Positions 1,421-53,900 are shown, counted from the stretch's first letter. The stretch: DNA of 64,000 bases from Klebsormidium nitens (GCA_000708835.1 DF237085.1:62001-126000), one strand, 5' to 3'. Notes: a model not told the origin generated them from the letters alone. Made by a program: numbers and translations.

Positions 1421-3647
1421 GATGATCTTTGTAGCCTGCTGATTCCGTGCTTGATTCAATGGCGTTGAACCCTCTAACAGCCCGTTTTTGAGCTTCGCTG
1501 CACTGATTGAATTTGAGAAGAATCATGCAGGCGTGGTCGGGTTTTGAGAGAAAGAGTGAAAAGGCTTTGGGGTGTTAGTCAGTGACATTGTGGGGCCGAT
1601 TCGTGAGCTGCTGTTCAGCTGTTACTCCGAAGCGGCTGGAAAGCTAGTCTCTCCAGGTACATTACCAGTTTCTCCAGGTGTGAAAACACATGTTTGAACA
1701 TCTAGCAGGCTGAGGAAGCAGCTGCTTCGTAAAATGAATCTGGTGGTGCATCTTCAGATCCAGTGACGTTATAGAGTTTCTTACATCACAAAATCCATGC
1801 ATTGAAGTGTATTTCACCAATGTGGCGCGCAGCCGCTTATCAATTACAAAGGGCGGGTTATGCCCAGCCGGCTTCGCGAGTCAGCGAAAATTATAAAGGC
1901 GTGCATTGATCTGGCCTTGACGAGGCCTCATTGTCAGGTAAGCTGCCAATGCCACTGCATTGCAGACACGTTGCAGATTGTCTTTATTTGCTGTGGATTG
2001 GATTCGTTGTAGCTCCTTCTGTGAAATCTGTTGACACTGGTGGTGCAGAATAAAACTCTGTTTTTACTGTATTCGAATGACTCTATAGCCCCCACAATCG
2101 CTCACTTTGAGGCTACATCAGATTGCAAAGGATCCACTCATGAAAATCGTATCACTCTCCTAATGATGGCCCCTGCGTTGCCCAACATATGCTGGGCAGT
2201 GACTCTTCCAACCTCAGAATGCCGATTCATCAGCAATCGGTGTCCGGCCCACAGCTTAGCAGTCTAATGCAAAGGCGGACATTAAGCTAAACTGCAACTG
2301 GGAGAGTCCAAGTTGAAGCCTTTCTGGTTTTTTAGAAGTCAATACTTTCATTGGTATAGTGTCCAGGCTAGGCGCTGAATGCATTATCCCTGGTAAGGGC
2401 CGGGTATGCCAAAGCATCAGTGTTATCGAGTGGTTACAGGTATGCCAACTTGAATTGGCTCATGGCGAAACTAATCGGGCACACAGGCTGAACCTCCCAA
2501 GCTCAAATGCATTCAGAGTCAAACAATAAGCTTGTTATGGGGCCAGGAATTCAATTACCATCCTTGTTATGCCGCTTGATTGATTGTTTGTCTAGGAGAG
2601 GAGATCCAGTTTGAAAACTTTGGGTATTCAGAAGTCCAGCACATTTTTAGCCTAGAGACACCTGGGCGATTGAATGGGCACATTTTTTCCAACATCAGTA
2701 CAATGCACCAAAGGCCTTTGTGTTCGCATGCAACTCGACCTTTCAGCGCCATCCCCTTTTACACATTCTCGTCGGGTCCACACAAATTGAGCGGTTCTGA
2801 AGAAAACCAGATTTGGTTTCTGCCATATGCACAAGTTCTCTTCAACGGTCAATTCTTTTACTTTGAAGCTGGTAGTGCAAAAGTTTACGTTTGACTCGAG
2901 AAGAACGACAGAACAGCAGTGATACCCTGCTCCACTGAGAGAAACTCAGTGCTGCAAAGCTACGGGTCCATTAGCAGCTTACACTGATGGAGGGCTGGTA
3001 TATACAAAGGGCAGGGTAAGATGAGCCCAATTTTGGAGACAGCTTGGTGAAGAGGGCTATGCGGACGCGGGCCATCATTGTAACGCCCTGTTCCGCAGTC
3101 CTCAATACTCTTGCCCATTGCGCCTGCTTGTTGCATTTTTCAGTGTGCATCCAAGAGCCTGGCGCTGCTGAATGATTGCTTATCCTCCGCTTTTGCCTAT
3201 TTGGTCAAGGAAAAGTTGGGGAAAAGTCCTTACCTGATATAGCCCATCCCAGATCAATAGGCAATTCTTCCTATCTCCCCAAAACACCAGTGCACTCTGA
3301 TAAGCAGCATGGCACTGGTTTGATCAGTGACAGGTGTACGCTGAAGGACAGATGGAAGAGGTACCGCTTTCTGCCAACGCTGTGCTTGACAACACGTAAT
3401 GTACAAGTTCCTCTCCCTGCAGTGATTGCACAGCTAAATCTTGGGGCGGTCATCTTGGGGGCGGGGGCAGGGCGCTCACTGCTTCAGCAAAATTGGTCTT
3501 TGACACCTGGCCATTTGTTACGGTGATATATGTTGTTTTATCAGGCGTGCGCGCTATCCCAAGCAGCGAAACAAAGGGAAATTCTGTAAGAGAAACAACC
3601 ATGCTCTGAAGCTTTGAAGAACTGCCCATGCAGAACGGGCGCCTGTA

Positions 3648-6600
3648 ATGGGGTTCCTCAAGAGGTTATTCAGTGGGGGCAGTGCGCAGCCGAGGGGGGG
3701 GGTGCAACGCCCGGGCACTGCACCCCCCCAAAGGACAGGGAGCGCACCTGTACTGCGCCAGAATGCGGCGCAGCAGCAGGCTAACTCAAGAGAAGTCAAG
3801 CTGGCAGACTTGGTCAACTGGACCAACCTCCAGAGGCCGCGGACAGCTCTTGACGACAAGGTAAGGTGACGTCTTCCTTGTGGGGCTCAATGTTGAGACC
3901 TTGGATGGTTCCGCTGGCAACACCTACTGTCGGAGAAAGTGCGGGCCAGAAAAAGATGCTCTCTTGGCAGCCAAGTTGGGGCCCTCGTGCCAGTGGAAAG
4001 AGAGTGCCAAAGACGAGGCCAAATCATGGGGCAGTGCCGTTGCTGGTGGCCTTCTTTTTGGAGGGCCTGGCCTCGTGTGCAATGGAGGACTCCCCCGAGA
4101 TCCTGTGTCCATCCTCGACTGGTTTGCGTATCTGCTGTCATAGCAAGTGCTTGGAAAATGGTCTTAGTGCGCAGCATGTGCCTTCAGTGTGAGGCAGAGC
4201 TTCAAGCCCCGAAGACGGCGAATGTTGAGCACTCGGCCATCTGTGGCGAGCTCATGCTTTGGAAGATAAGCCTCTGAGTGTCAGCGAGTAGAATTGACAA
4301 TGGAAGACCAGTAGAGTTCAATGGATGCAGGTCTGTTTTGGGGAGCCCCTAGTGCATAATACATTGCGCCCCTTCTGAAACCTGCAAGTACAAGATTCGT
4401 AGAGGTAGTGCCAGTTGTTGGAATGCACTCACTGCGCTGGATTGTGCTGACGTCAGGCTGATCACTGCAGGCTGAAGCACGGCGGCGAATGGCGGAGTGG
4501 ACCAGGCAAGGAAGGGGAGAGACAGAGCGGGAAGACCATGTTCTGATAAAAGCGGCGGAAGGATCAAGTGAGCACTTGCACACGCTATGACTGCTGGCAG
4601 ACAGTCCTTGCCCTGACTCCTATGTAACCTGCTAGCTGTTGTGTAATACTCTCATGTCTTAGTCAACCTCTCTCAGTAGTCGGACCACTGAATTTCAGCT
4701 TGATCAATAAGTGATGTTCGGACAACTTTTCTCTCCCCCTGTTGCAGTCTCCCTAGAGAATTATCCCATTCAAGTGCTGCAGTTCTTATTGAACCTTGAC
4801 TGTGCAGCCTGGAGTCTGCACTATCCCACCCTGCGGTCGGGGCATGCCTACCTTTCACAAGTCTTTGAGCTGCGGGAACTCCAGCTAGCCACCCGGGGGT
4901 TCCACCAGGCAGACCTAGTCGGAGAAGGGGGCTTCGGCAAGGTGTTCAAAGCAGTCCTGACAGACGGCCGGGTGGCGGCGGTGAAGCAACTAGACCGAGG
5001 CAGGACGCAGGGGGATCAGGAGTTTTGGGTGGAGGTGAGGGGCATGCTGGACCTCAGCTTGCATAGTGTTGGAAGCTTGTCCTAGCGAGCGTGCTGACAT
5101 AAGCTGGTGCTCGTGACTGCTTGCTGAGGAGGTTCGTGGTGAAGGAGTGAAAGTTGTAATGACCAGCCCCTGCTTAGCTAGCACGTGTCAAGTGGGGCTC
5201 CTGTCAATCAGGCTTGATCCACAAGCCGCTGATGCTGCACACGATCTGATTGTTGCTGTTCCTATCTAGCTCCAGCTCAATATTAGGCTGACATAATGAA
5301 AACATCTTAACTTACTTTGATCTATGCTAAGCTGGCTGAGCGCAGAGAGCAGGAACAGCACTAAGCAATCTGTACCACACTTCCAGGTTGAGATGCTGAG
5401 TAGGCTGAGGTCCCCCCACGTGCTGACCCTGTGGGGCTTCTGCGCGGAGAGCAACCAGCGGTTGCTGGTCTACGAATACATGCGCAATGGGAGCCTGCAA
5501 GACCAGTTGCATCGAGATGGTAAGAATCGTGACTCTTGCTCAGATGAATTCGAATTTGCTAACATGAAACGACAGGTAATCAGAGACAGGCTAGAGACAC
5601 ACGGGAATGAGAACTCTGGCAGGACGATGGTGAGATGGAATTGTGGATCCGATCAAAAGGAAGGTCGAAATGAGGTCGAAGGAAGACGAGAAGTATTGAG
5701 ATGGGACGAACTCGGACCAATATCAGAACGAATAGGGGTGAGCACGAGGCTAAGTCCAACAGACCGAAGTTTGACAAAGACGTTACTGAATCAACCCTGA
5801 ACGAAGCAGAGTCGATTTCGACCAGAAGGAAGAGCAGTGAAAGTCCAGAACGAATTTGAAAAGCGACCTCGAAGTACCAGCTCTTCATTGAAAGAGGGAA
5901 GATAAAACAGCAAGGAGACCATGTGTACACTGACGGTCCAAGCCTCAACCTCGCGTCGCCCTTCCCCTGCAGAAAAAATGATGGGCCGGCCCCCCTTGGA
6001 CTGGCCCGCACGGTTACAGATCGCTCTGGACGTCGCCTGTGCATTGGAATATCTGCACGAGGTGGCGCAACCCCCTGTCATTCATGGAGACCTCAAGTCG
6101 AGCAACATTCTTTTGGACTTTGATTTCAAGGTGAGCACGGCATGCGCCGTCGATGCTGGGAGCCTGCGACTGATTTTCTCGGCCATCTAGTCTGGTTGCG
6201 AACAGGAGTGGAGACGTTTTTGTCTGTCCTCGTCCGGCAAACATGTGCCTCCCCTCCTGGCTTAGGAAAACGCAATTGAAAGTTGATAAGAAAGGAAGCC
6301 TGCAAATCTCTTCGAACGATTTGCAGAGTACTCTTCAAACGCTAGAAAGTGGGTGGAATAAAAAGCTGACACAGACTCTGACCGCTTTTAAGCCCTGGAT
6401 TGTGCATAGATCGATTCATTTGAAATCGATGCCCTGACTGACAGCACCAAAATCTCAGCGGTGCTTTCAACCATTCAGCGATCCTGGCCCCTCGTGACAT
6501 TACTGCAAGGGATCATCAAATCGGACCGCGGGGCTTTGGAGAAATGGACAAAGAAGGCTGCACATCGTCCTTACTCCTGCTCTCACTCAACCATTATCAA

Positions 6601-9600
6601 GCGCGCGAGTCAGAAACTCGGCTTCCCAAGCGCCACAGTCGCCTCTTAGAACCGCTTTCGGACCCTAGAACACTACTGTAGCAACGCTCTCAAGAGCCTC
6701 AAACCCTGTAACCCAAATCCTTAGGCCAGACCTTGAGAGCCTAAGCTGAAACATTTTCCAGGCGAAGCTAGCCGACCTGGGCCTGGCGAAACGCGTTCCG
6801 GCGGGGGGCCAGGTCCGCGCGGACGTCCTGGGCACGCACGGCTACTGCGCGCCGGACTACGCCGCGACCGGGCGCATGACGACCAAGAGTGACGTGTACA
6901 GCTTCGGGGTGGTGCTGCTGGAGCTCATCACGGGGCGCGCGCCGCTGGACTTGAAGAAGAAACGGTCACTTGTGTCGTGGGTGAGTCTCGAGGACAAGAT
7001 TCGGAGGCAAGGAACGGCTAATGCATTTTCCAGATTACGAGTAGGTAATGAGAGTATACTCTCCGTATCGTGGAGCTTGGTTTGCGGCTCTGGCGGGTCG
7101 GCGTTGCTTGATCGTGGGAGCATTTGCGATTTCAGAAACGGAACCGGCCTCTGTTCCAAAAGAGTCCGGAACCACCGAGCCCGACCTGCTTGCCTGCAGG
7201 GTCAAAATGTTGGCCAATCAGAACGCCCAGATGGGAATCGATCTGTCGTAAGTCTCAAAAGCTCGGATCTTCCAGTGACAGGCGGGAGTAACCGGGTCCC
7301 TCATCAAGCGTTTCCACTTGCGTCAAGCTGCTCAAGGCGCTTGCTAACCTCCTCAAACCCCTCCCCGGCAAAGACTAACCCGCGCCTAGTCAGGCCCCTT
7401 TTGCTGAACAACCACCGCTTCCCTTGAACCCTAGCTTGCTCACCTCCTCAACCCCCTTGTTAAGCTGCTTCGACACCCACTAGCCCCTCTGTACCCCTCC
7501 CTTAAACCAGGCACTCCCCCTGCTGCGCGACAAGCGCGGGCTGGCCAAGATGGTGGACCCTGCCCTGGAGGGTTGCTACTCGATGAAGGACCTTTGCCAG
7601 GTGGCGGCCATCGCGACCCTCTGCTTGCAATCCAAGGGCGAGTACCGGCCGTTGATGGGGGATGTCGTCACCAGCCTGCTCCCGCTGGTCATCAACTCGT
7701 ACAACGGGGCGGAAGGTTTCGCCTCGGAGCTGGAGGAGGTAACTTTATATCCGCTTTTGCTTGAATCATCTTGCGACCTTTTGTATGCAAGGTATCCTTC
7801 TTCTGTGGCCGACATCGGTTTGAGTCTGGCATAGTTTTAGTCGTGCTCTATCGTCTAGATGCAGTTGTGTTGACCCGTACAATGGCCAGATTCTCAAAGC
7901 AAGCTCTTCACTTTTGCGGGTCAATTTTCGTGAAGAGGACTTCGTTTGAAGCATGATACAGCAGCCGGTTTTAGAACTACACAGCCAAAACCTCAAGCAA
8001 CGGCAACGGCTTCAGTAGCCAGCTTCTGCATCATGACCATTGAGCTCGTTCAGCAGCGAAACCCTCATGCTTTCCCAACAGTCAACTCCCTTCGCCCCAA
8101 CATCATTCACATTCACAGAGACAAAGTTCGATGTAAACCCGTTGCACAGTCGAAGCTGCCCGACACTAAAGCCACACTCGAAGCTCTATTACGTCACACT
8201 TATAACGTCGTCTGCAAAATTCGCTTCCTGCAGTTGCTGGGAATCAAGCAGCAGCAACAAGCGAGTCGGGAGCAGTCCGCGTCCGAGGCTCAGCCCGGTT
8301 CGGTTCACCGGGCGTTTTTGGCCGACGGCCGGGAGGTCATTCTGGCGGAAGTGGGCGGGGCCTGGGTGCGGCTGGCCAAGGAAGAGTTTGCGACCGAGGT
8401 CAGTCACAGCCGCCAGAATCCGCCGTGTTGGTTGCACGGCATGGGAGCAAATTCTGGATCTGAGAATTTGTGAGAACATTTCTAATTTAGCAAGGCAGGC
8501 TTTGGCTATCGAGAGGCCTGGCGATTCTCCGGCGCCACGGTGGGAATGTAAGGACTCACCCAGCCTCTTCATGGGGTGCTGAATTGAATCAGTGTATGTG
8601 AAGCTTACAACTCTTTGTCAAGTGGAAGGCAAGCAAAGCTTCGGGACAAAGTTTGCCTGGAGGCAGCATTCGTTCAATCCTACTCCAGAAAGATGTCTGG
8701 GGACTGTGGCTACCTGACCCCTTCGACCAAAACAGGAAAAACCATCCGAACGGCTGGAGACTCTGGATTGCAGGATTTTCCGTTGTATGCGCCTCTTTTG
8801 GACTTAGTTGCTTTGTTGGAAAACCACTGTAAAATTCCCTACGAACACATGTTTAAATGCTTCTCTTCCCCCCTTTGCAGGCCACAATAATGACCCAGCT
8901 CAGCTCGCCGCACCTGCTGACCCCCTGGGGCTACTCCTCCAGTCCCGCTCACCGGCTGCTCATGTTCAACTCCGTGCCGAACGGCAGCCTGGAAGAACGC
9001 CTTGGTACAACGGGTGAGTTCTCAAGAAAGCATCCTTTGGTTTTGAAGCGGGTCAAGGAATCTAACTTGGATATCGGAATTTGTTTGACGGATTTCGTGG
9101 GCAATGGATCTAAGACGCGCCAGGTAACTCTGGTTCAGCAAACGGCCGCTGGATGGGACGCCACGTCAACCGTATCAAACAGAGTCAACGGCCATTCTGG
9201 GCTCTCTCCACAATCTAAATGTTTCTGTTCAGAGGGACATCTATCACTGCCACTTGACTGAGTCCAACGTTCGAGTTTCTGTCAATCGAATCCGCAAAAA
9301 GCCGCACCTTTTCAACCGCCCTTCTTCTTTCGTGCCGTTTTCAGGTGCGCCCAGGAGTCCTCGGCCCTTGGACTGGGACACGCGCGTGCAGGTCGCCCTC
9401 GATTGCGCTCGGGGACTCGGCTGCCTCCACGAGAAAGGGCTGGTGCACGGCGACTTCAGGGCGACCAACGTACTCCTGGATCAAACCAACACGGTAAGAG
9501 GAGAGGGAGGGAAAAGGAACCTCGCGCAAGGACTGCGAACTTTCGAATGCCTGTGAGACAAAGGCGACATAGAAAGGTTGAGCATTCATGTATTGACAAG

Positions 9601-12600
9601 CAAGGAGGTGGAAGCATGGATCGCAGTCGGAAAACATATTGCGGTGAAAGGGGAGAGCATTGAGAAGAGGAAGATAAAGCAGGAGGGGAAGCCAAGGAAA
9701 TGCTTTCTAGCAACTGAGAAAGGTTGGCGAAAGAGGTGAAAGAATCAGGGAGGAGGCTTGTTGGAAGTCCATAATGTGTTGCTTCAAAATCGGGCTTGAA
9801 TCTGGTAATGTTTCGGGACAGCGTAATCCGATAATCGAGTAGGATGCATCCCTCGTGTTTCGATTCCAGGCGCAAGTTTCGGCGTTTGGAGTGACGAAGC
9901 CCAGCACCGGCAGGAGAGGGGCCGTTTGCCACGTGGCACCCGAGGCGGCTTTCACGGGGACGGCCACGCCGCGAAGTGACGTGTATAGCTACGGGTTGAT
10001 GCTGCTGCAGCTGATCACGGGAGAGCACCCGGCGGGGGCAAACCCCGTAGCCTGGGTGAGAACCTGACCTGCGACCCCCTGAAAATGTTACGCGCCGAAC
10101 GGCATCCTTTACCAATTCGCCATGCAAATGCGTCGTCAACCTCGATGCGCTTATTCGAGTCTTTTCGAGATTCATCTTTCGTGCCAACCTTTGTCTCCCG
10201 CAAAATCCAGACGACTTGATAAGCCGACGTTTCTATCGAGTCGGCAGACCAAATTTGTCCTCCTGTCGTTCTCAGCAACACTGACGGAATCACACGCATC
10301 GCCCGCAGCCCTTTCCTTTCTCCGTTTTTCCGTCCGTTGCGCCTCTAAGCCACGTTCCTGGTCCACGTAACCCACTAGTTGTTTTGAGCATCCTTCTGAA
10401 CCTGAACTTTCATAGGCAGCTGCTTCGGTTTCACAAACCCCAATTTCGAAACCCTAACCCCCTTTTCCATCCTCCCCATAGGCTATGTCTCTGGTGACCG
10501 ACCACAAGCGCCTGGCCCACGTGACCGACCCGCACCTGCAAGGCCAGTACCCCTTCCGAGACGTCAGCCACGTGGCAGCCATCGCGGCCATGTGCCTCCA
10601 GCCGGAGCCTGCCCACCGTCCGTTGATGACCGACATCGTGACGAGCTTAATGGGGATTGCAGGCAGACCCAAAACCGTGGTTCCGCCTCAGGAAAGGGGG
10701 GCCGGAACGCGGGCGGCTGAGGGGGTAGCGCGCAGCGCACCGCAATTGGAAGAGGTGGGGCCATGTCTGTGCGGCGTGTGTGGTCTCTTCGACTCATCGA
10801 GTTTTGCGGGGAAACTTGGAACTTTTTATTCCTGTTGCTTGGTCACGCTCCAAGTCAGAAATAAGGCCGTGCATTGGTTTGGGTGTGCGGTGACGTTTTT
10901 GGAACTGGGAACGCCTCGGAGGCCTCCAAGCACTTGGAAACGTACAACTTACCCGCCTGGAAGGCAGTGATGGGCTTTTGCAACGTCAGTCATCGACCGC
11001 GAGCAAACACTGATTGCGTTTTCTGGTCGTGCTTACAGCTGGCAGTCCCAGAGGATGCACACCTTTGTCACGCTGAAAATTCGGACATCTCAGTAAGTTA
11101 CGGGGATTCCGTGTCAGAGAATCAATCTTCAGTGCTTAGCTTTACTTGGGAGATACCCTTTACTGCACCCTACCTGGCATCTGCCTTGCACATTGTTCGT
11201 GCTGGCAACCTGGTGTCCTGAGCAACGTTGACCGTTTGGAAGTCCCTCGCTGTGGGGATTCCCTGACGGACACGTGTCCTCCTGCTTCGTGCAGGTCTTT
11301 GGCGAGCGCACGCCCGCGGCCGCAGACTACTGCGAGCCGGACGATTTTAGCAGCGACGAGCTGCAGATATCGCTCAGGCAAAGGTCGCCGGTAAGTCTTC
11401 CCCCAGTCGTTCGCCCACCGCATGCAGATGGCGTGACCACAAGAACCCAAGTTGTCAGACCCTTAATCTTCTCCGCGGTTTTATTTAATCTGATGAACGC
11501 GATGTGATTCCGCTGTCGGCTTGCTTTCGAGCACTTCTTGGCGCAAGACGGCCCTTTACGGTGCTCAGCAAACCACCAATGCGAAGGCGTGCCAGCCAAA
11601 GGGTTGAGAGGCACGTCTTCGTTTCAGTATTTGTGTCACACACCCCGCAAACGAACGCCTCTCAGTCGCCGTTGCACGAGAAGCATCATACTGCATCTTA
11701 CCATGGATAAAGGAGGGCTAAGGGATGAAACGCGCTTCAGGGAGTAAAAGGAGGAGGGGGAGTAAGAAAAGTCGCAGCAAACAGTCAGGGCCGAGGAAAA
11801 TTTCAGAAGGTGGGGAGACGCTGCGCTCTTCAAAAGATGCTACTCAGTTGCATCTACGGACTGACGGAGCGCATGTCTGGCTTTGCAGGCCAAACCTCGA
11901 AAGATGCCGCTTGTGTCGACGTCCGAAGACTCGGAGGGCGAACAGCATCCAGTCATCTCACGACAACACGACGAGGAGCTGGTGACCGAGGTGAGGGCTC
12001 GGGAGGCTTCCCAGAGCTATGCTTTGTATTATCCAGATGTCCAGTTTCAATGTCTTCAGCCCTTGTCTGAGGGTTTCGAAGCTTTTTCGATCTTGGAATT
12101 GCTCAGTTTGTGGGTTTTCACCTCTTTTAGTCACAGCTTCGAGGCTTCAGGTTTTCATTCACTTCATAGATGGGTGAAAAACGCATCCTCGATTGCAAGG
12201 CCGTCGTTCCAGTTCGCAGTGGTCTCTGAGCACCTCGCCTCTCGACGGCTCTCGTTTCTCTCGTTTCATTTTGGACGTGCATAAAAGCTTCGGTTTCTGC
12301 GGGGCTATATTTCCAAAGGCACGAAGACAATCCCAAGGTGGCAAACCCCTGAAGTTCCGTCGTTCCGCCGTTCCGCCCCGCAGCCGTCCAGCAGCCGCAC
12401 CGCGTTCTTGCTACGCGACGAGTTTCCGCTGTACGAACGTGACGGCCCGCTGTCCGACGCGGACGATGCGGACTTCGCGTCGGACCGCGAGGAGCAGTTC
12501 CTGGACGAGGACGATGACGTCAGCGACCAGGGCACCGGCGCGCCGTCCGTGCACGACGGCTGGAAGTCTACCCCCTCCGGCCAGGTGGGGATGCGCGCCG

Positions 12601-13371
12601 TTGCCTGGCTTGAGTGCGGCCTTTTGCGCCTCCTCGGTCGCTTTTATCGCTTGGTCGCTTTCTTGCTTGTTAGAAAAGAGCGCTTTTCGTTGAGTTTTCG
12701 GTTAGCTGATTTCACGGTTAGCGCGGGGCTTCGCCGAGCGGACCTGCGAGCGGACTGTTCGGAGGAGACGAGGTGCTGAGCGAAAAGTTCAGATGCGTCC
12801 TTGTGTCGTAGCGACCGCTCTTGACACCCTGGGCTGTGGTATGCTTGTGACTTCGATGGAATACTGCCTCCGCGCCCCGCCGTTTGAATGTCCACACGCC
12901 AAAACGAGACGCTCAGAAGATGTTTTCGGCCAGAACGAGCCAATCCAAAGCAGCCTCCCTCTTTCCGCCGAGTTGCGCGCCGGCATTGCACAACCCGTCC
13001 GCTGACGTCACCTCCACGTCAACAAGCCGTGCTCTGACGTCACCTCCACGTCACCTTCCCTCCCCCAGGTGTACGTCAGCCGGGACTACGACTTCGCGGA
13101 GCTGCAGGCCAGCACCGACGAGTCCAGCAGCGCCTTCGAGAGCGACGCCCGGGGATCCTCCTCCGCGAGGGGCCGCCACGTGGCAGCGCCGGGACCGTCC
13201 GTCCGATCGCACCGGCGCCAACGGTCGTTCGAGTTCGACGACGCTCTGCGCCGGGAGGTGAAGCTGTGGCCGATTGGCTCCACCCGGAGTGACGTGGGCG
13301 TGGCGTCCGTTGGCCGCTTTCGGCGCGGACGGCCCGCGAGCGCGCGCGGGCCGTTGTTTGGGGGGAGATGA
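3648..13371 (+). CDS. Receptor-like cytoplasmic tandem kinase-pseudokinase (RLK/Pelle family), multi-exon
   Basis: N-terminal exons 3648-3860 (MGFLKRLF...) and probably 4471-4567. Kinase 1 exons: 4808-5034 ([13 protein letters not shown]), 5387-5519, 5973-6130 (HGDLKSSN), 6762-6980 ([19 protein letters not shown]), 7511-7738. Kinase 2 exons: 8234-8398, 8881-9013, 9345-9493 (HGDFRATN), 9870-10055 (SAFG, APE, SDVYSYG), 10482-10754. All are GT-AG and phase-compatible. Probable acidic/Ser-rich tail exons at ~11298-11390, 11890-11991, ~12394-12584 and 13070-13371; these and the final stop are less certain. Confidence 0.85.
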
Positions 13372-13568
13372 CGGGTTATCGGGTAGCGCGCTAAGGGGTC
13401 GGGTTACCGGGCAGCGTGCTCGGGAATACGGGTTATTTGGTAGTGTGCGCGAGGTTACGGGTTATCGGGGAGCGTGCTAAGGGGACGGGTTATCAGATAG
13501 CGGGCTCGAGGTTACGGGTTACCGGACAGTGTGCTCGAGATGACGGGTTAATCGGGTAGCGTGCTGAG
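13371..13568. repeat. Minisatellite, 7 x 28-29 bp, core ACGGGTTA
   Basis: Units start at 13371, 13399, 13428, 13457, 13485, 13514 and 13543; consensus approximately acgggttaYcggRtagcgtgctcgaggtt. Confidence 0.9.
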
Positions 13569-19627: not shown

Positions 19628-26221
<6,594 letters not shown>

Positions 26222-27077: not shown

Positions 27078-30000
27078 ATGGCGAGACAGGGGGTTGGTCT
27101 CCTGCTTCTGGTAGCTCTCGGATGCATTCTTGCCGAAGCTGATGCTAGGAGCATTGAGTTTCTCAGCGTTAGAGTGCGTACATTGCTTTCAGCAAGCGAC
27201 CACAAGTACAGAGACCATGAGAAACCACCCTTGTTTGCCAACAAAGTGGGCCCCTTCCATAATCCAACGTGAGTCAGAACGGTTTAGGGGTGGGTATTGC
27301 CAAGGATCTGAGGCATAATGGAGTTGTTGCTCAAGTCATCCCACGAATTGAACTTTTGCATTGAGCAGATGCTTGCTTCCTTCGATCAGGGATGATCTCC
27401 TTCAGCTACTTCTGCTGGAAGCTAGCATTGTGGCACGGGTTCTTTCGAGCTCTGAACATGAAGATAATAAGGTGTTTTTGTCCGACTTGCAGAGAAACAT
27501 ACAAGTACTACGATCTTCCCTTCTGCCCTCCTGGTAAGAAGGAATAGGGTTTCTTCTCGAGATCTATGATTTGCATTGCAATGCGTTGTTACTGTAGGGT
27601 TTGGATATATCCATGCCATCAACCGGCAAAAGGTGGACGTGAAATGTATTGCCGAAGCTTTAAATCCTCTCAAGAAGCAGATTGGATTTGCAGCCTGATT
27701 TTTGACCGAGTGCAAGATAGATCTATTGTAGACCCATATGTCGCAACACAAGCAGAGCGCAGCTAGCTCTCAATGTTGTTGGCAATACCGCTCTGTTATT
27801 TCCAACTGCAGAGTGTCTGCCGAATCTTGGAGCAAGCTGATAGTTCGTGAAGTTTCTGTCTCCTAGCTCTGGTTGTGTATGCTCATGTCCAGTTTTGATT
27901 CAGAAGAGGATTACTCAAGTCTGCATTTCAGCAAACATTGAACGAAATTTGGACATTGAGAAGTGGGTGGTCACCTAGTCGCCAGCAGGTGATGGCTGCT
28001 CTGAACATCTATCGCTGCCTAATCGATGGCATTGGTGCAAGTGCATCATTGACCATACAGGAATTACTGGATAGATGGACTCGTTTTTGCACGAATTTTT
28101 TTTTGAATCTGTAACATGCTTGACTCAACAAGGCACTTGGTAACTTTCAGCTGTTGATCTCTAGCACCACAACAGCGTCATGTTCTTTCTGTCTGCAGCG
28201 CTTTTTCTTTTGATGCTCTCCTTACTGCAGCTGAAGTATGAATTGAAATGTTCAGTAGCTCGCATCTTTTTCACCTTGCTTGGTATCTTTTGCACCTTTC
28301 GAGTCCAGCAGGTTTGCTAGGAGTCCATTCCAGCCCTCAGCATCTGGGTGCATTGTAAATGGGCCTCTGTAGCCGGCTGATTCTTGGCTCTCCCTGCAGT
28401 GGTCCTGAATGAGAAGGTGGAGGATCTGGGCGAGGTACTGAATGGGGACCGCATGGTGACGGCCGCGTACGATCTGAGCTTCAAGGTGGACAAGGAGAAG
28501 GAGACTCTCTGCGTGCAGAAGTTGTCCGTGAAGGATGTGCGCAAGTTCCGGGACGCTGTGAAGAATGATTACTACTTCCAGATGTACTACGACGACCTCC
28601 CTATCTGGGGCTTCATCGGCAAGATCGACCCCCCCGACGAGAAAGATGCGCGCTACTATCTCTTCACGCATGTGCACTTTGACATCCAGTACAACAAGGA
28701 CCGTGTGATTGAGATCAATGTGGCGACCGACCCCCTGCGCACAGTTGACATCACTGAGGATGCAGAGGTGGAGGTGGAATTCTCATATTCCGCCAAGTGG
28801 CAGGAGGTGGACAAAGCTTTCGAGAAGCGGATGGACAAGTACTCGCGTTACTCGTTCCTGCCCCAGCACCTCGAGATCCACTGGTTCTCCATCATCAACA
28901 GCTGCGTCACCGTGCTGCTGCTCACCGGTTTCCTGGCGACTATCTTGATGAGGGTGCTCAAGAACGACTTCATCAAGTGAGTGCATCACAATTGCGGCAA
29001 GTTACTGGATAACTGCACTTGAGAAGCCAAGGGCGCTCAAGATTGTCTTCATTCAGTGTTTGCATTTAGAATGGATCACTTTGACCAGCAGTTGCGGGGA
29101 AGATAAGCCGGCATCCGACCACCAGCTGCTGGTGAAAGCCGCAAAGTGGACCATGAGTGAGAAGTGGTCTAGATTGTGAATCTGCCCGATGGGGCAGATC
29201 TACCCCCTTAAATAGACCTTTCAAGTATTTGGACTTGCAACAAAGGATGTCTGCTTTTATATGTATGAGCGCCACGTTCTAGTTGAGTCACTTACCTGTC
29301 CTTACATGTCAAATCATTTCGCAGGTACTCCCGTGATGAGGAGACCCTGGAGGATCAGGAGGAGACCGGGTGGAAGTATGTGCATGGCGACGTGTTCCGC
29401 TTCCCCAAGAACAAGACCCTCTTTGCGGCTGTGATCGGAAGTGGCAGCCAGCTTCTGGCACTGTAAGTCACAAGCTTCTTGGCGAAAACACTTGCTGTGA
29501 CAGTCTTTTGGTATGTCATCCTTGAGTAAAGATGCAAAGGAGCCAATGCTCGGTTTCTTGAATCTGGAAACTGTTTCTGCCAATATTGGTCGTCATGGTC
29601 ATGCCAAGTTGGGCACCCTGATCCTCGTAATCACTTCTGTTGTTCAGTGCTTGCCCCTAGCAGCTGTCGTCATGAAACCCATCCTTGCTCGTTGCTAGCT
29701 AGCAAACACTGTTCTGATGCCCTTTTCCCAGGACGCTCTGCATCTTTGGCTTGGCTCTGGTGGGCGTGTTCTACCCCTACAACCGGGGCGCCCTGTTCAC
29801 CGCCCTTGTGGTCCTGTATGCGCTGACCTCCGGTGTGGCCGGCTACGTCTCTGCCTCCTACTACAAGCAGCTGGAGGGGACTGCATGGGTGAGCATCAAG
29901 CTTCAAGACTCGTTACTTTATCTCTCTACTATGGTGGACCTTTGTTCTCTTTGCTCCTTTTGTTCCTTGTTGCTGCTTGGAGATTAGCAATTGTCCGGCG

Positions 30001-44960: not shown

Positions 44961-46091
44961 TTAGCTGACGGTGATCTTGCCAGTCATGCCCGCTCCCTGG
45001 TGAGGCTCGCAATAGTACTCGTACTCGCCAGCCTTGGTCAAGGTGATGGTCACAACGTCACCCTTGGCGTTGACGAGGTCCTAGCAAAGACAAGAGAGCC
45101 GGGTCAAGCTTGTTTACCGTGTGCCACAATGCACATTGATGCAGACTGTATGACAGCTGTCAACTCCGTAACACATGTGCAAAGCACAATCTTCAAGGAC
45201 GAAAGCCCTTGAAGATGTCATACATTCGATATGTCATCGTCTCTCGTCTACCCTTCCCACAATGTGCCCTTTCTGACGGATTCTTTATCATGTTGCATAT
45301 TTTCTGCTGTAATGACCACAGGAGGTGCCCCTCAAGAATGCATTGAAGTCCACATAAACCTCGCATTCCCTGTAATTCTCCAACACAAACTCACAACTAC
45401 AAAGGGCTGAAAGACATAGGAGTCTCTGTTTGCCGCCTACAAATTCCCCCTACTGATGCAGTCCAGCTGACGAATACAAAACCTACAGATTCCCCGTCCT
45501 GATACAGTCCAGCTGACTTTTTCAAACCCCCCCCTCTGCTAGGGAAGGGATTCGCTAGAATCAACGACTATCTCAGACACGAGCGCGCAATCATCATTGA
45601 CCACAAAGCACAGTATCAGAAGATTCAGTGCTGAAGATTAAGTACTATGTAAGCTTGTGACAGTACAGTCAGGTCTGACCACCAAACAACATGCTGGCCA
45701 CCCCAACACACAGGAGAGGGTGACTTACATCGTGAGACAGAGCGCCAGCGTCCACGCCTGCAGGAACCGCATCCTCATCGAACACGATGTTGTGGGGGAA
45801 CCCAGCATTGTTCGTGAAAGTGATGGTCTCGCCAGCAGACACATTCACAGAGCTAGGGATGAAGGCGAGCTCGCCACCGTCTCCCCCCATCTTAATGTTA
45901 GCAGCGTTGGCGCTGAAAGCAACGGCAAGGGTGGCGACCGACACACCCGCGGTCTGAGCAATCTTCTTAAAGCTGGGGAGAGCTGCGCGGGGGGCCACAA
46001 CCCGGGGGCCGGTCATGGCAGCGGGCTTGGCAGCGACCGCAAGGCCAGCCACGGAGGAGACGCACCGGGAGGAGGCGAGAGCGGAAGCCAT
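44961..46091 (-). CDS. PETE: Plastocyanin precursor (one intron)
   Basis: Bipartite transit peptide ending in A-N-A; mature [15 protein letters not shown]...[17 protein letters not shown]. Exon 2 reads DLVNAKG...[20 protein letters not shown]. Cu ligands H, C, H, M are present. Confidence 0.98.
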
Positions 46092-46438
46092 GGCGTTAGG
46101 AGGAAGGCACGAGCAGCGAGTTGAGAGGAGCTCTTTTAATTTAGCAGAACTGCAATTGATCGGAGGAAGAGACTCGGAGAAACAGTCTTCGCTGCAAACT
46201 TTAAAATTAAAGTTTATTACCTTGCAGCAAGGAATGTTCTTAATATTTGGAAGCAGTTTGAAATCTTCCAGGGGGGGTCAATCCAAGAAATTTCTACGTT
46301 TTGTGGGGGACGATCTCCGGCGCCATAGTGCCCATGGAAATGAAAGCATGGAGGGGTATATATCGCCAATGCGCAACAGCAGCGGCCAATTAGGTGCACA
46401 TATGGGCGAGAGACAGAGGCAGAGACTGCTGCTAAGGG

Positions 46439-50139: not shown

Positions 50140-50979
50140 CCCTTGCTCCGCTGAACGCTTATGCGTCTCAAAGCCACTGTCCGCCCCACTGCTCCAAGCT
50201 CGCCACGCGCTACTGCGCCGCGGCTCGATGGTCAAACCCTGTCCGCTCGCGTCCCCGCGCGCGGTCCTAAATCCGCCGATCGAGTCCACGTCACCACCGC
50301 GAACCTTCAAACCATTCGCGGACGGTCAGCACTGGATCAGAGCCTTTACAGATCTCTGGACCATGCACCCGACTTTGACTCGCTCGGTGGGTTCGGCCCA
50401 AAATTTTATGATCGACCATCAGCAGCAGCGCAAGCAGTGCATAAGTTTTACACGAGACTCTAGTCGATAGAGCTCCTTAGTTTTCAGCTTGAGAAGCTGG
50501 CACAGACTGTGAATCGAGGTCAAAGCGCCAGGCCTTCATTGACCTTGCTTCATCGGGGCATGGCGATAGGTCTTGAAGATCCAAGAGCCAAACGCATCAG
50601 ATGGTGAAGACATGATATCGTCTAGGGCCGTCAGTCTCAGGCCGTCAGTCTCGAAGTTGTGGTCCGGTGAAGGGAATTAAAGACAGCTTACTGGCGGGGT
50701 CAGGTGCATATGCATGGCTGCAACCACCTCATAGCAGCTGTGGTTCCTGCCACCGGTTTGGGCCAAATTTGGTGACGTCCAGGAGGGAATGACCTGGATG
50801 GCAAGGATGCAAAGTGCGTCGATTTTGAGAAATGGACTTCAAGCCGTTCCCTAGTTGTTGTGCATTCCGCATTCTTTGGCACACCCTCTGGTGCATTGTA
50901 TGCGGGCGCCTGATGAGTGCCATGTTGAGCGGCTAGTCTGTGGCTGCACGTAACGCATTCCGTTGGGAGGTCCCCGAGC

Positions 50980-53900
50980 ATGAGCCCCATGCAGTCGCTA
51001 GGCCCCACTTGGGACCTCCAGGCGCCAGCCCCAGGCGTATTAAAACGTCTGAGTTCCTTACCTAGTGAGATGGACAACACTCGGTTGCTGAAGATCAAGA
51101 GTAGCACGGGCGCAAAAGGGCCCTGCCTAAGGGAGGCCGACCGTGCCAGCTTAAAGGAAGCGGCGCCGTTGACGCAACAGGATGATGTCAGCGCCTCCTC
51201 CACTGGTATCAGAGCCGTCGCTCTTCTCCAGAGCGACCACGCCCTCCATGCTCTGACCACCACCGTAGGGCAAGAACTAGGCACTGCGCTGATGCCAGCG
51301 GAGCGGCCCAAGGGCCCCGCTGACGTCGGCGAGGTCGTCGGCTATGCTGATCTCCTGCGGTCTCGGGGAAAGACAGCGGAAGCGATGTCGCTCTACGACT
51401 GCGCCCTCGGGGCGGACCCGCGCTGCGCCCCGGCGCTCGTCGGGAAAGGCGCCTGTTTGCAGCAGCAGCAGCAGCCGCGCGCGGCGTTCGCGTGCTTCGT
51501 CGGGGCGCTCGCGCTGGACCCCCTGAACGTGCAAGCCCTGACGTGGTGCGGGTTGTTTTACACGGAGGAGGGGCACCTGATGGAGGGGATTGAAGTGAGC
51601 GCATTCACAAGAATAAGACTTGAGAATTAAAGGGTTGACGTGACAGGGACAAAATGGAGAAGGGTGGCAAGTGTAGTGTGGCGTCGCCGTTGGGAGGCAA
51701 TCGATGGGAGCCTTTGTAAAGCGGAACAGATCGGTGGGAGCCTCAAATGGTCCAAACAGAGTTTTTTGATCTCAGTCGCTTCTGATGGATACCTGTCAAG
51801 GTGCCCAAAAGGTGGCAGCTTTACAACAAAGTATGCAGAGTTTCAACTGTTGGTCCGTCTGCCAAGCTGAACCTACCGTCTTGTTTGTCCATATCATGAT
51901 AAGAGGATGTCGGTTCGAAGAGCGCGGTCCTTTGAAGCTTGCTTCCTTCACTTTGATGAGCTTTGTGTCTCGCACCTGGGACTGGGCTTCCTTGTGGCAA
52001 TGTCCGTATTACTCGGTGAACGGTCACACATATACATGGGGTGCAGGCATTTCAACCCGTTAGATGAACAAGGTCCCACATATGGTTATTTTATCACGAC
52101 GTTCTGCAGGCGTTCCGGAAGGCGCTGGTGCTGCAGCCGGACTTTGCGGAGGCAAAGGAGCACCTGGCGATCGTGCTCACGGACCTAGGCACGCGGTTCA
52201 AGCTGGCGGGCAACGCGCAGGAGGGCATCCAACGCTACTATGAGGCAATTGAGGTCAACCCGCGCTGTGCGGTGAGCCACTCTGCGCAGCACTGAGCCGT
52301 ACTTGAGTTTACGTTTTGCGTCATGCCGCTGACACTTTGGGGCGCTTGAAAAACGTAAGAACGGCTCTCATGTTTTGAACTGTTCGGTGTGGACAGCGTG
52401 GGGGATGCTCGAATTTTGTCTAATGATCGTAACGAGCTTCGCAGATTTGTGTCGTCTTTGGAGGGGCCTGCCCCTGGTAAAGCTTGCTTACCTACAGAGT
52501 TGGTTAAGGGGGTTTGGATAACGTCATGAGGTTGTACGTCCGCATCACGTTTTTGCCGTCTTTGTCTGAGGTGCAGCCAAAGCGCTACACGTTCAAATTT
52601 CCGTGTAGTTTGACGATCAGATTTGCCACATGCACCTTCTCTCACATAGTAGGCTTCCCCCGGAAACTGCTGCTAAAGATCAACTGATTTGTGCACTGAT
52701 TGACCATACAATCCCTCTTGTCCCAGCCCGCATACTACAACTTGGGCGTTGTGTACTCTGAGATGGGCCAGTACGCGCACGCGCTCAGCTTTTACGAGAA
52801 GGCGGCCCAGCTGCGGCCGCTTTACGCCGAGGCGCACTGCAACATGGGCGTCATCTACAAGGACCGGGGAGACTTGCTCGCGGCCATTGCGTGCTACGAA
52901 AGGTGGGGTTAAATCCTAGGACACTACTGTAAAGATCGTTATTGTGAACGATGTCAAAGCAATTGCCAGAGATATCAAAAAGTTTGCTGACGACCGTCAT
53001 TGCTTGCCGAGAACTGATCCCGTTGCGTCCTTTGCGGCTTTGATTGAATTGTGGATTAGAAGTCTCATTATCTGCCGACGGATCCGAGTCGATGAGCGGT
53101 GGAAGCGAAAACATTGGTGCATGAGCCGTTTTGGCAAGACAGGCAAGTCTTGTGAGGTCGGCTGATTGGAAAGTCTCTGGCTAGTCCAGGTCAAGGGAAA
53201 CTTGTGTAAGCTTCTGAGAGGTGGAAGTATTCTTCTTGAAAGAAAAGCAAGGCTTCCAAGAAGCCACCCTTTCAAGACCCTTTAAGGACGCGTTGGTGGC
53301 GGCTCGGCAGGTGTCTAATGGTCGCCCCCAACTTCACAATCGCCCGCAACAACCTCGCCATCGCGCTCACCGACCTGGGCACCAAGGTGAGACGAGTGGA
53401 GCTTTTTTTGGCCTGTTGCCAACACTTGACTTCATGGACACAATCAGTTTCAGCGTTCAGAATCCTATATCATTCTCAAGAGGGCGTCAAATTTCAAAGC
53501 ACATGCGTGCATCTGATTCCTGAGGGGACAAAGATTTCATCTGACGGCTCAGATTCGATCTTGAAAGCTGCCTTTGGCGACCGATGCGGAGCACTTTGGT
53601 CGCTTGAGGTAGGACCGGCGCCCACTTCAACTAGCCATCCTGTCTGAGTCAACCAAGTTACCAAGCTACGAATCGTGCCACTACAGAACAGCTGGGTTCC
53701 TGAGGCAAAGTAGTGAGAAAATGCGTGCGCGGCATTCTTTCAAACCTCTGTGCTTCAGTCCGAGGCTAGGTTCTGCGCCTGATTTGGCTGATGTTTGTCG
53801 TGTCGTCTCAGGAGGTGCGCGCTCTTTGACGTGGTTAGTTGTGTTAATATTTGGTGGGTGCATCTGGTGCGTGAAAGGCCTGGTTGAAGTTGTTTCGTGT

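Follow-up and report, generated by a model that had tools for sequence, protein, structure and literature searches.

Tandem kinase proteins (TKPs) combine two kinase-like domains in one chain; 92 of them have been reported, including one in moss, with multiple origins through duplication or fusion, and an origin by duplication has been proposed for 52 of the 92 (PMC6170490). A later survey lists 2682 TKPs from 104 species (Reveguk 2025, cited in PMC12365797). As far as these sources describe their sampling, the surveys cover land plants only (PMC6170490, PMC12365797). A review counts 91-94 receptor-like kinases (RLKs) for Klebsormidium and leaves tandem kinases unmentioned (PMC10868138), and we found no literature linking a tandem kinase with Klebsormidium or with green algae. 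Here we describe a locus from the streptophyte alga Klebsormidium nitens in which two RLK/Pelle kinase modules, D1 and D2, lie one behind the other within a stretch of 64,000 nt (DF237085.1:62001-126000, called "the window" in the following, with positions counted from its first letter). The locus appears to be a real, conserved pair of a kinase and a pseudokinase, most likely forming one gene, with a tandem design that is already known from other systems.

The window has a GC content of ~52% and is eukaryotic, with GT-AG introns of 240-631 nt. By reading exons and matching them to Pfam profiles, we delineated ten exons on the + strand, from 4808 to 10754, which form two homologous kinase modules of five exons each, D1 followed by D2 (Table 1). 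All introns of this set have GT..AG borders, the intron phases are 0,1,0,0 within each module, and no third kinase copy was found in the window. Scanned exon by exon, the equivalent exons of D1 and D2 fall on the same positions of the Pkinase and PK_Tyr_Ser-Thr profiles. Exons 1-4 of D1 and 2-4 of D2 match these profiles collinearly, as expected of members of the kinase superfamily, and several single exons exceed the gathering score by themselves (exons 2, 3 and 4 of D1, exons 3 and 4 of D2; scores in Table 1), while the fifth exons of both modules match kinases in protein and structure searches. When D1 and D2 are compared directly, exons 2-5 are 41-56% identical (41% for the exon 2 pair) and none of 2000 shuffles attains the observed scores; the exon 1 pair is weakly similar (48 of 2000 shuffles attain its score), and over all exons the identity amounts to 97 of 201 positions (48%). 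The two-module anatomy proposed in the initial annotation, with introns at equivalent positions and a phase 0 intron at the junction, was thus recovered. So was its view that the protein has neither transmembrane segment nor ectodomain: no membrane segment was found, the highest Kyte-Doolittle mean over 19 residues being 1.15 across all exons. No Rfam match was obtained between positions 3000 and 14000.

The two modules differ in their catalytic residues. In D1 all catalytic motifs are retained, as HGD, DLG and APD, and the alphaC Glu is present. It departs from the usual motifs by a Leu for the Phe of DFG, an Asp for the Glu of APE and a non-RD catalytic loop, with a residue other than Arg ahead of the catalytic Asp in the HGDLKSSN of all four loci examined (the window and three related loci, see below). 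The D1 motifs are identical in the four loci, and D1 is probably an active Ser/Thr kinase; its activity is a prediction from residues, and the HGD, DLG and APD deviations leave room for doubt. D2 of the window has a degenerate G-loop, an Ala in place of the beta3 Lys and no DFG Asp (SAFG), and keeps HGD and APE. Under the sequence definition given in PMC13519141, a domain counts as a pseudokinase once any of three residues is missing, namely the beta3 Lys, the Asp of the catalytic loop or the Asp of DFG; judged by its residues, D2 is a pseudokinase in this sense, and the reading of an active-looking D1 and a dead D2 made in the initial annotation holds by the same residue criteria.

The losses in D2 are not the same everywhere. 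The G-loop is degenerate and the beta3 Lys lost in D2 of all four loci. In the window and its closest relative (L001) the Lys is replaced by Ala and DFG by AFG, with HGD kept; in the two others (L002 and L004) the Lys is replaced by Arg and SDFG is kept, and HGD has become HGR (L002) or HGK (L004). D2 exon 1 is also shorter and more diverged in these two loci (LVGKLPGAS...VVVRE). Because different catalytic Asp residues were lost in each lineage, and the Lys and G-loop in all, D2 seems to be an old pseudokinase; the simplest reading of these patterns is that its catalysis was lost in the common ancestor and that the remaining catalytic residues then drifted separately.

The related loci came from searches for D2. 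A HMMER search with D2 exon 5 against 1.84 billion representative proteins gave two close matches, both open reading frame (ORF) fragments on genomic contigs. The loci that hold such sequences are L001 (Logan SRR23617307, 7.8 kb), L002 (a metagenome contig of the Joint Genome Institute, JGI) and, reached by a later search, L004 (Logan SRR14092358), a close relative of L002. L001, L002 and L004 all carry the D1-then-D2 tandem; its ten exons are present in each, their phases agree and every intron has GT-AG borders. In all, 20 of 20 splice sites are kept in the related loci and no exon is broken, the acceptor and donor of D1 exon 1 among the sites kept in all three. The loci are considered orthologous because synteny extends downstream to the fumarase gene (window 19628-24492, - strand; L002 15304-15937). 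Between the window and L001 the exons are 81-100% identical (D1 exon 2 93%, D1 exon 3 96%, D1 exon 4 100%, D2 exon 1 89%), and D1 exon 3 is 88% identical to that of L002. For D2 exon 5, the 91 aa up to position 10754 are 81% identical to L001 and 60-69% to L002. No publication was found to mention the accession numbers of the related contigs. Two further sequences, L005 and L006, had been considered as cDNA fragments and were rejected, because they contain introns and run collinear with L004 as parts of its genomic sequence. When alignments of D2 exon 5 and of D2 exon 3 were used to scan metagenome contigs of JGI, no relatives turned up.

Selection on both modules was estimated from the ratio of non-synonymous to synonymous rates (dN/dS), using Nei-Gojobori counts summed per exon. 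Between the window and L001 (dS ~0.4), dN/dS is 0.06 for D1 and 0.21 for D2 (D2 Fisher p 2e-11 versus neutrality); between the window and L002 (dS ~1) it is 0.15 and 0.28; and between L002 and L004 it is 0.023 and 0.084, with 30 synonymous and 8 non-synonymous changes in D2 (Fisher p 2e-12). D2 therefore evolves a few times faster than D1, and its exons contain no stop or frameshift in any of the four loci, all indels being multiples of three. On these comparisons, D2 is a translated and constrained coding sequence under purifying selection. The opposite idea, that D2 is a decaying pseudogene, an untranslated dead tandem duplicate, could draw on its lost catalytic residues, on a non-synonymous rate 2-4 times that of D1 and on the lack of any expressed D2 product in the protein searches. 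It is nevertheless hard to reconcile with four loci in which the ten D2 splice sites are kept and the reading frame is intact with codon-sized indels, with the dN/dS values and Fisher tests just given, and with introns that are saturated in the very same loci; moreover, a dS of 0.14 to >1 among the loci excludes that they are recent copies of a single sequence. Given dN/dS values of 0.08-0.28, intact exons and kept splice sites, we consider a pseudogene highly improbable. The initial annotation had named an untranscribed pseudogene as an outcome that would overturn its view of the locus; the conservation of D2 under purifying selection in four loci speaks against that outcome.

That D1 and D2 are parts of one protein is a less direct conclusion. 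The best model of the locus is nonetheless one fused gene, with positions 7738 and 8234 joined by splicing, and we regard it as quite likely. In all four loci a GAG/GTAA donor follows directly after the last conserved codon of D1 (gtaact, gtaaag, gtaagt and gtaagt; the slash marks the exon-intron border), and every one of them has a cag acceptor where the open frame of D2 begins. The spacer between D1 and D2 measures 495, 496, 552 and 586 nt in the four loci, within the range of the other introns, and blastn detects no similarity between the junction introns of the window and L001. No conserved in-frame ATG for D2 exists in the spacer: the window has one at 8033 and L001 one at 3281, both 5' of D2 exon 1, but at non-homologous positions, and L002 has none in the open frame. 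A fused gene is favoured because the donor is kept, the spacer is intron-sized and otherwise unalignable, and there is no conserved D2 start; these splice signals, the spacer and the missing start, with no record showing the join, are what bears on the single polypeptide that defines a tandem kinase.

Several observations weigh against fusion. Among the representative proteins searched, no long protein contains D2 exon 5, which is represented by the genomic ORF fragments only, and the protein searches gave no transcript-derived peptide matching D2 exon 1 or D2 exon 5. Word-indexed protein searches with D2 exon 1, D1 exon 4 and D2 exon 5 likewise returned neither a junction-spanning peptide nor any protein from the genome of the window. 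A stop codon follows in frame 31, 4 and 11 codons after the D1 exon 5 donor, so that a D1-only product is possible; in the window, a retained junction intron would meet this stop after 31 codons (7832-7834). The phase 0 of the acceptor is furthermore a weak test, because the acceptor was chosen at a codon boundary of the open frame. The joined domains of the initial annotation are thus upheld as far as the junction signals, conserved in the loci, are concerned, but no transcript or protein containing D2 emerged from the protein searches.

These observations could also be read as two genes, with D1 a cytoplasmic receptor-like kinase ending shortly past 7738 and D2 a separately transcribed, truncated pseudokinase that starts in the spacer. 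Such an arrangement would account for the stops lying 4-31 codons past D1 exon 5 in all loci, for the ATGs that the window and L001 have upstream of D2 exon 1, and for the missing database protein joining D1 and D2. Yet those ATGs are not homologous and L002 lacks any, the intron-sized spacer holds no conserved block fit for a promoter or a 5' exon, and a strong GAG/GTAA donor right after the last conserved D1 codon has been kept across a dS of ~1. We therefore judge two separate genes unlikely and retain the fused gene as our working model.

Table 1. Predicted exons of the kinase-pseudokinase locus in the window, with the intron between the two modules (a slash marks a splice border, introns in lower case).
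Feature	Position	Strand	Characteristics
Exon 0: start codon and N-terminal region	3648-3860	+	phase 0 donor AAG/gtaagg; no Pfam match
Exon 0b, 97 nt, phase 0 to 1	4471-4567	+	cag/GCT...TCAA/gtgagc; bridges exon 0 and the acceptor at 4808 (phase 1)
D1 exon 1	4808-5034	+	FELRELQ, G-loop GEGGFGKV, beta3 AAVK, alphaC EF..E; Pkinase positions 2-41
D1 exon 2, 133 nt, alphaC to hinge	5387-5519	+	PK_Tyr_Ser-Thr 53-94, 31.1 bits
D1 exon 3: LDW helix, catalytic loop HGDLKSSN (non-RD)	5973-6130	+	Pfam 25.3 bits
D1 exon 4: DLG, activation loop, APD, alphaF	6762-6980	+	Pkinase 138-203, 49.5 bits
D1 exon 5: end of C-lobe and linker	7511-7738	+	closes in ELEE/gtaact
Junction intron D1/D2, 495 nt, phase 0	7739-8233	+	GAG/gtaact...ctgcag/TTG
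D2 exon 1: linker, degenerate beta2-beta3, alphaC EEF..E	8234-8398	+	without G-loop, without Lys
D2 exon 2, 133 nt	8881-9013	+	length and phases as D1 exon 2
D2 exon 3: LDW helix, HGDFRATN	9345-9493	+	PK_Tyr_Ser-Thr 97-139, 29.4 bits
D2 exon 4: SAFG, short activation loop, APE	9870-10055	+	Pfam 25.7 bits
D2 exon 5: end of C-lobe to 10754, then unconserved tail	10482-10970	+	TGA 10968-10970

The ends of the gene required revision. Because the acceptor at 4808 is of phase 1 and conserved, there must be coding exons upstream of it, and the gene start placed at 4808 by the initial annotation was wrong: two coding exons, 0 and 0b, precede it. The start motif of exon 0, which has an in-frame stop just 5' of it in the window, is matched by MGLLKKLLSGG in L002 (955-1149), where the donor is also of phase 0, and exon 0b has its counterpart in L002 at 2462-2567, with the same phases and a similar peptide (..EHVVIQGVDGT). 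A direct connection of exon 0 to D1 exon 1 through an acceptor at 4783 was rejected, as all loci conserve the acceptor at 4808 with its phase 1 and the 97-nt exon fits in between. The protein begins with MGFLKR, which departs from the myristoylation pattern of PROSITE, and no Pfam domain was detected in exon 0, exon 0b, the C-terminal tail or the downstream open stretches. If the reading frame continues through position 10754 to the stop, the coding exons total 2394 nt (798 codons) in 12 exons spanning ~3648-10970. The product would be one soluble, cytoplasmic RLK/Pelle tandem kinase protein of a predicted ~798 aa, with the proposed order of a short N-terminal region without known domain, the D1 kinase, a linker of ~37 residues and the D2 pseudokinase with its truncated N-lobe.

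The 3' end of the kinase gene is uncertain, and a donor is possible at 10754. Past the EE position the tail varies in length, with 71 codons for the window, 32 for L001 and 6 for L002, and L004 has a CAA codon where L002 stops. Further downstream on the + strand, exons at ~11039-11093, 11296-11393, ~11886-11987 and beyond encode an acidic protein; they are of phase 0 and conserved in L001 and L002. One variant, compatible with the fused model, would splice GAG/gtgggg at 10754 to the exon at 11296-11393 and thereby add an acidic C-terminal region. A GT does follow the homologous codon in all loci (GAG/gtgggg in the window and L001, AGG/gtaggt in L002), neither the length nor the sequence of the read-through tail is constrained, as the L002 stop replaced by CAA illustrates, the downstream exons share phase 0 and strand, and in the window the next candidate start codon comes only ~85 nt after the stop of the kinase. 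Against this, the conserved ~11039-11093 exon has a canonical donor (weaker in L002) and, in the window, L001 and L002, an ATG in phase with the 11296 exon; ATG CAC is common to the window and L002, the ATG of L001 lying three codons later, and in the two outside relatives examined the stop sits in the final exon. Since the first small exon has this ATG, whose phase suits the exon after it, a separate downstream gene is favoured for the acidic protein, and the spliced extension appears possible but on the whole doubtful.

The downstream acidic gene (window 11039-13400, + strand) contains repeated motifs, DDFSSDELQ (11296-11393) and YDFAELQ (13066-13113), and its start codon has apparently been shifted by three codons in L001. 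About 25 nt 5' of the acceptor of its 11296 exon, amid otherwise diverged intron sequence, lies a block of 11 nt, GACACGTGTCC, whose core CACGTG resembles a G-box (window ~11263-11273); the GACACGTGTCC block is identical in the window, L001 and L002. A further intronic block of ~100 nt (window 11516-11619) is conserved in L001; it shows no coding pattern and has no Rfam match. In L002, a short tandem-repeat array (10300-10640, units like GAAAGGGTCCGTCTTTCC) is found 3' of the kinase stop, which is absent in the window and L001.

By their best matches rather than by a tree, both modules belong to the RLK/Pelle (IRAK) family. Ranked against PDB structures, D1 exon 4 is nearest to PBL2, RIPK, SYMRK, BIK1, BRI1, BAK1, Pto and IRAK4, and D2 exon 5 to RIPK, BAK1, PBL2, SYMRK, BIK1 and CERK1. 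The named matches to D1 exon 4, from a search that covered proteins of 124-394 aa only, are PBS1-like RLCK-VIIa kinases with ~60% identity (PBL5/7/21/23/27, CDL1, RLCK-VIIa-1). Two other proteins match D1 as well or better, namely P0020, a membrane-anchored kinase of 425 aa, and P0080, a leucine-rich repeat (LRR) kinase from assembly GCA_003427395.1, which we take to be Chara braunii. As P0020 is at least as close to D1, a placement within the RLCK-VII/PBS1-like subfamily would be tentative. Among the proteins matching D2 exon 5, P0003-P0007 and P0011 do so at 2-5 separate stretches, and P0006 (774 aa) has four repeats of a kinase C-lobe segment; these may be true multi-kinase proteins or mis-joined models of tandem arrays.

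Per-exon scores did not reveal D1 and D2 as sister domains: outside kinases are nearer to D1 than D2 is, and D2 itself stands about equally far from D1 and from those kinases, a lack of closeness that is expected for a fast-evolving dead domain. Intron positions are partly shared with outside relatives, a Nymphaea PBL27-like gene having two and the P0020 gene three of the four found in D1 and D2. The shared five-exon structure thus seems largely the ancestral gene structure of this kinase group. The intron after LLDxxxx has no match in the outside genes that were examined, and hints at a specific link between D1 and D2. We propose that the locus would have arisen by tandem duplication, either of the five exons of the kinase or of an entire gene next to it. 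The former end of D1 would have become a phase 0 donor and an in-frame acceptor within the duplicated first exon would have been recruited, a step that would remove the beta1/G-loop region of D2. Catalysis of D2 would then have been lost before the sampled lineages diverged, with D2 retained by selection as a non-catalytic module.

In such a protein, D2 would presumably neither bind nor use ATP, and would act as an intramolecular regulator of D1, a docking surface for it, or both, in the way JH2 acts on JH1 or as the pseudokinases of plant tandem kinases may do. The output of D1 would then hinge on what binds or modifies D2. An immune role of the locus is speculation, and its very early origin, offered as one alternative in the initial annotation, is conjectural. 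One could go further and imagine a kinase-pseudokinase sensor, already established in the ancestor shared by the Klebsormidium-like algae sampled, in which the dead PBS1-like domain is an integrated decoy watched by its own kinase; we regard this as a long shot. If it were true, intracellular surveillance by tandem kinases of the cereal style would be older than land plants and would function with no NLR (a receptor with nucleotide-binding and LRR domains) next to it. No NB-ARC domain was found among the long open stretches of the window.

Other genes of the window were noted as well. The fumarase gene that anchors the synteny is of class II (fumarase/Lyase_1), with a Pfam match at 24034-24492 and C-terminal exons at 19628-19984. 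Exons of an EMP70/TM9SF endomembrane protein (28381-28977, +), a plastocyanin-type copper protein (45672-46277, -) and a tetratricopeptide repeat (TPR) protein (50929-51627, +) follow. Upstream, two small elements resemble miniature inverted-repeat transposable elements (MITEs), one at 805-1066 with perfect 27-nt terminal inverted repeats 208 nt apart, and one at 620-795 with 28-nt repeats (93% complementary) 120 nt apart.

TKPs are an actively studied class of plant immune receptors, and a conserved kinase-pseudokinase from an alga would offer a simple, culturable system beyond crop immunity, in which the D2 variants that lost different catalytic residues form a natural series. Because the fused product appears to be missing from protein databases, surveys based on proteomes would miss the locus. 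The weight of the finding is limited by an architecture known to arise repeatedly and by a fusion that was read from sequence.

Among known systems, the Janus kinases offer a parallel in design: a kinase and a pseudokinase of the same fold share a chain there, and selection has preserved the dead domain, as it has D2. Janus kinases are, however, unrelated animal tyrosine kinases with the reverse order (the JH2 pseudokinase before JH1) and additional FERM and SH2 domains, and JH2 keeps nucleotide binding whereas D2 has neither G-loop nor Lys. The RLCK-VII kinases PBL2, BIK1, RIPK and PBS1 are the best solved and named matches (~60% identity for D1 exon 4, and matches to D2 exon 5 as well) and resemble D1 in their cytoplasmic organisation and in a domain that opens with FxxxEL...GEGGFG. 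They are single-domain proteins with RD, DFG and APE, and often with N-terminal acylation motifs, whereas D1 has HGD, DLG and APD and is followed by a second, dead domain. The closest architecture is that of the TKPs, such as barley RPG1 and wheat WTK1/Yr15, WTK3/Pm24 and Sr62. Like these, the locus has two RLK/Pelle kinase-like domains, one keeping the key residues and the other without them, which would lie together in one soluble protein with no membrane segment; as in TKPs, membrane-targeting motif, receptor sequence and extra conserved domain are all lacking. The active KinI domain of WTK1 is non-RD, as is D1, and an origin by duplication is plausible for the locus too. The differences lie in the host, TKPs being described from land plants and the present locus from a streptophyte alga, in the role, which is resistance for the cereal TKPs while the locus is known from its sequence alone and its fusion is predicted, and in the kinase types, which are nearest to PBL/RLCK-VII-like and P0020-like kinases here and of the WAK, LRR_8B/DLSV and RLCK-VIII types in the cereal genes. 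Since the TKP family has multiple origins (PMC6170490), it is plausible that the Klebsormidium locus arose independently of the cereal TKPs and is not their ortholog.

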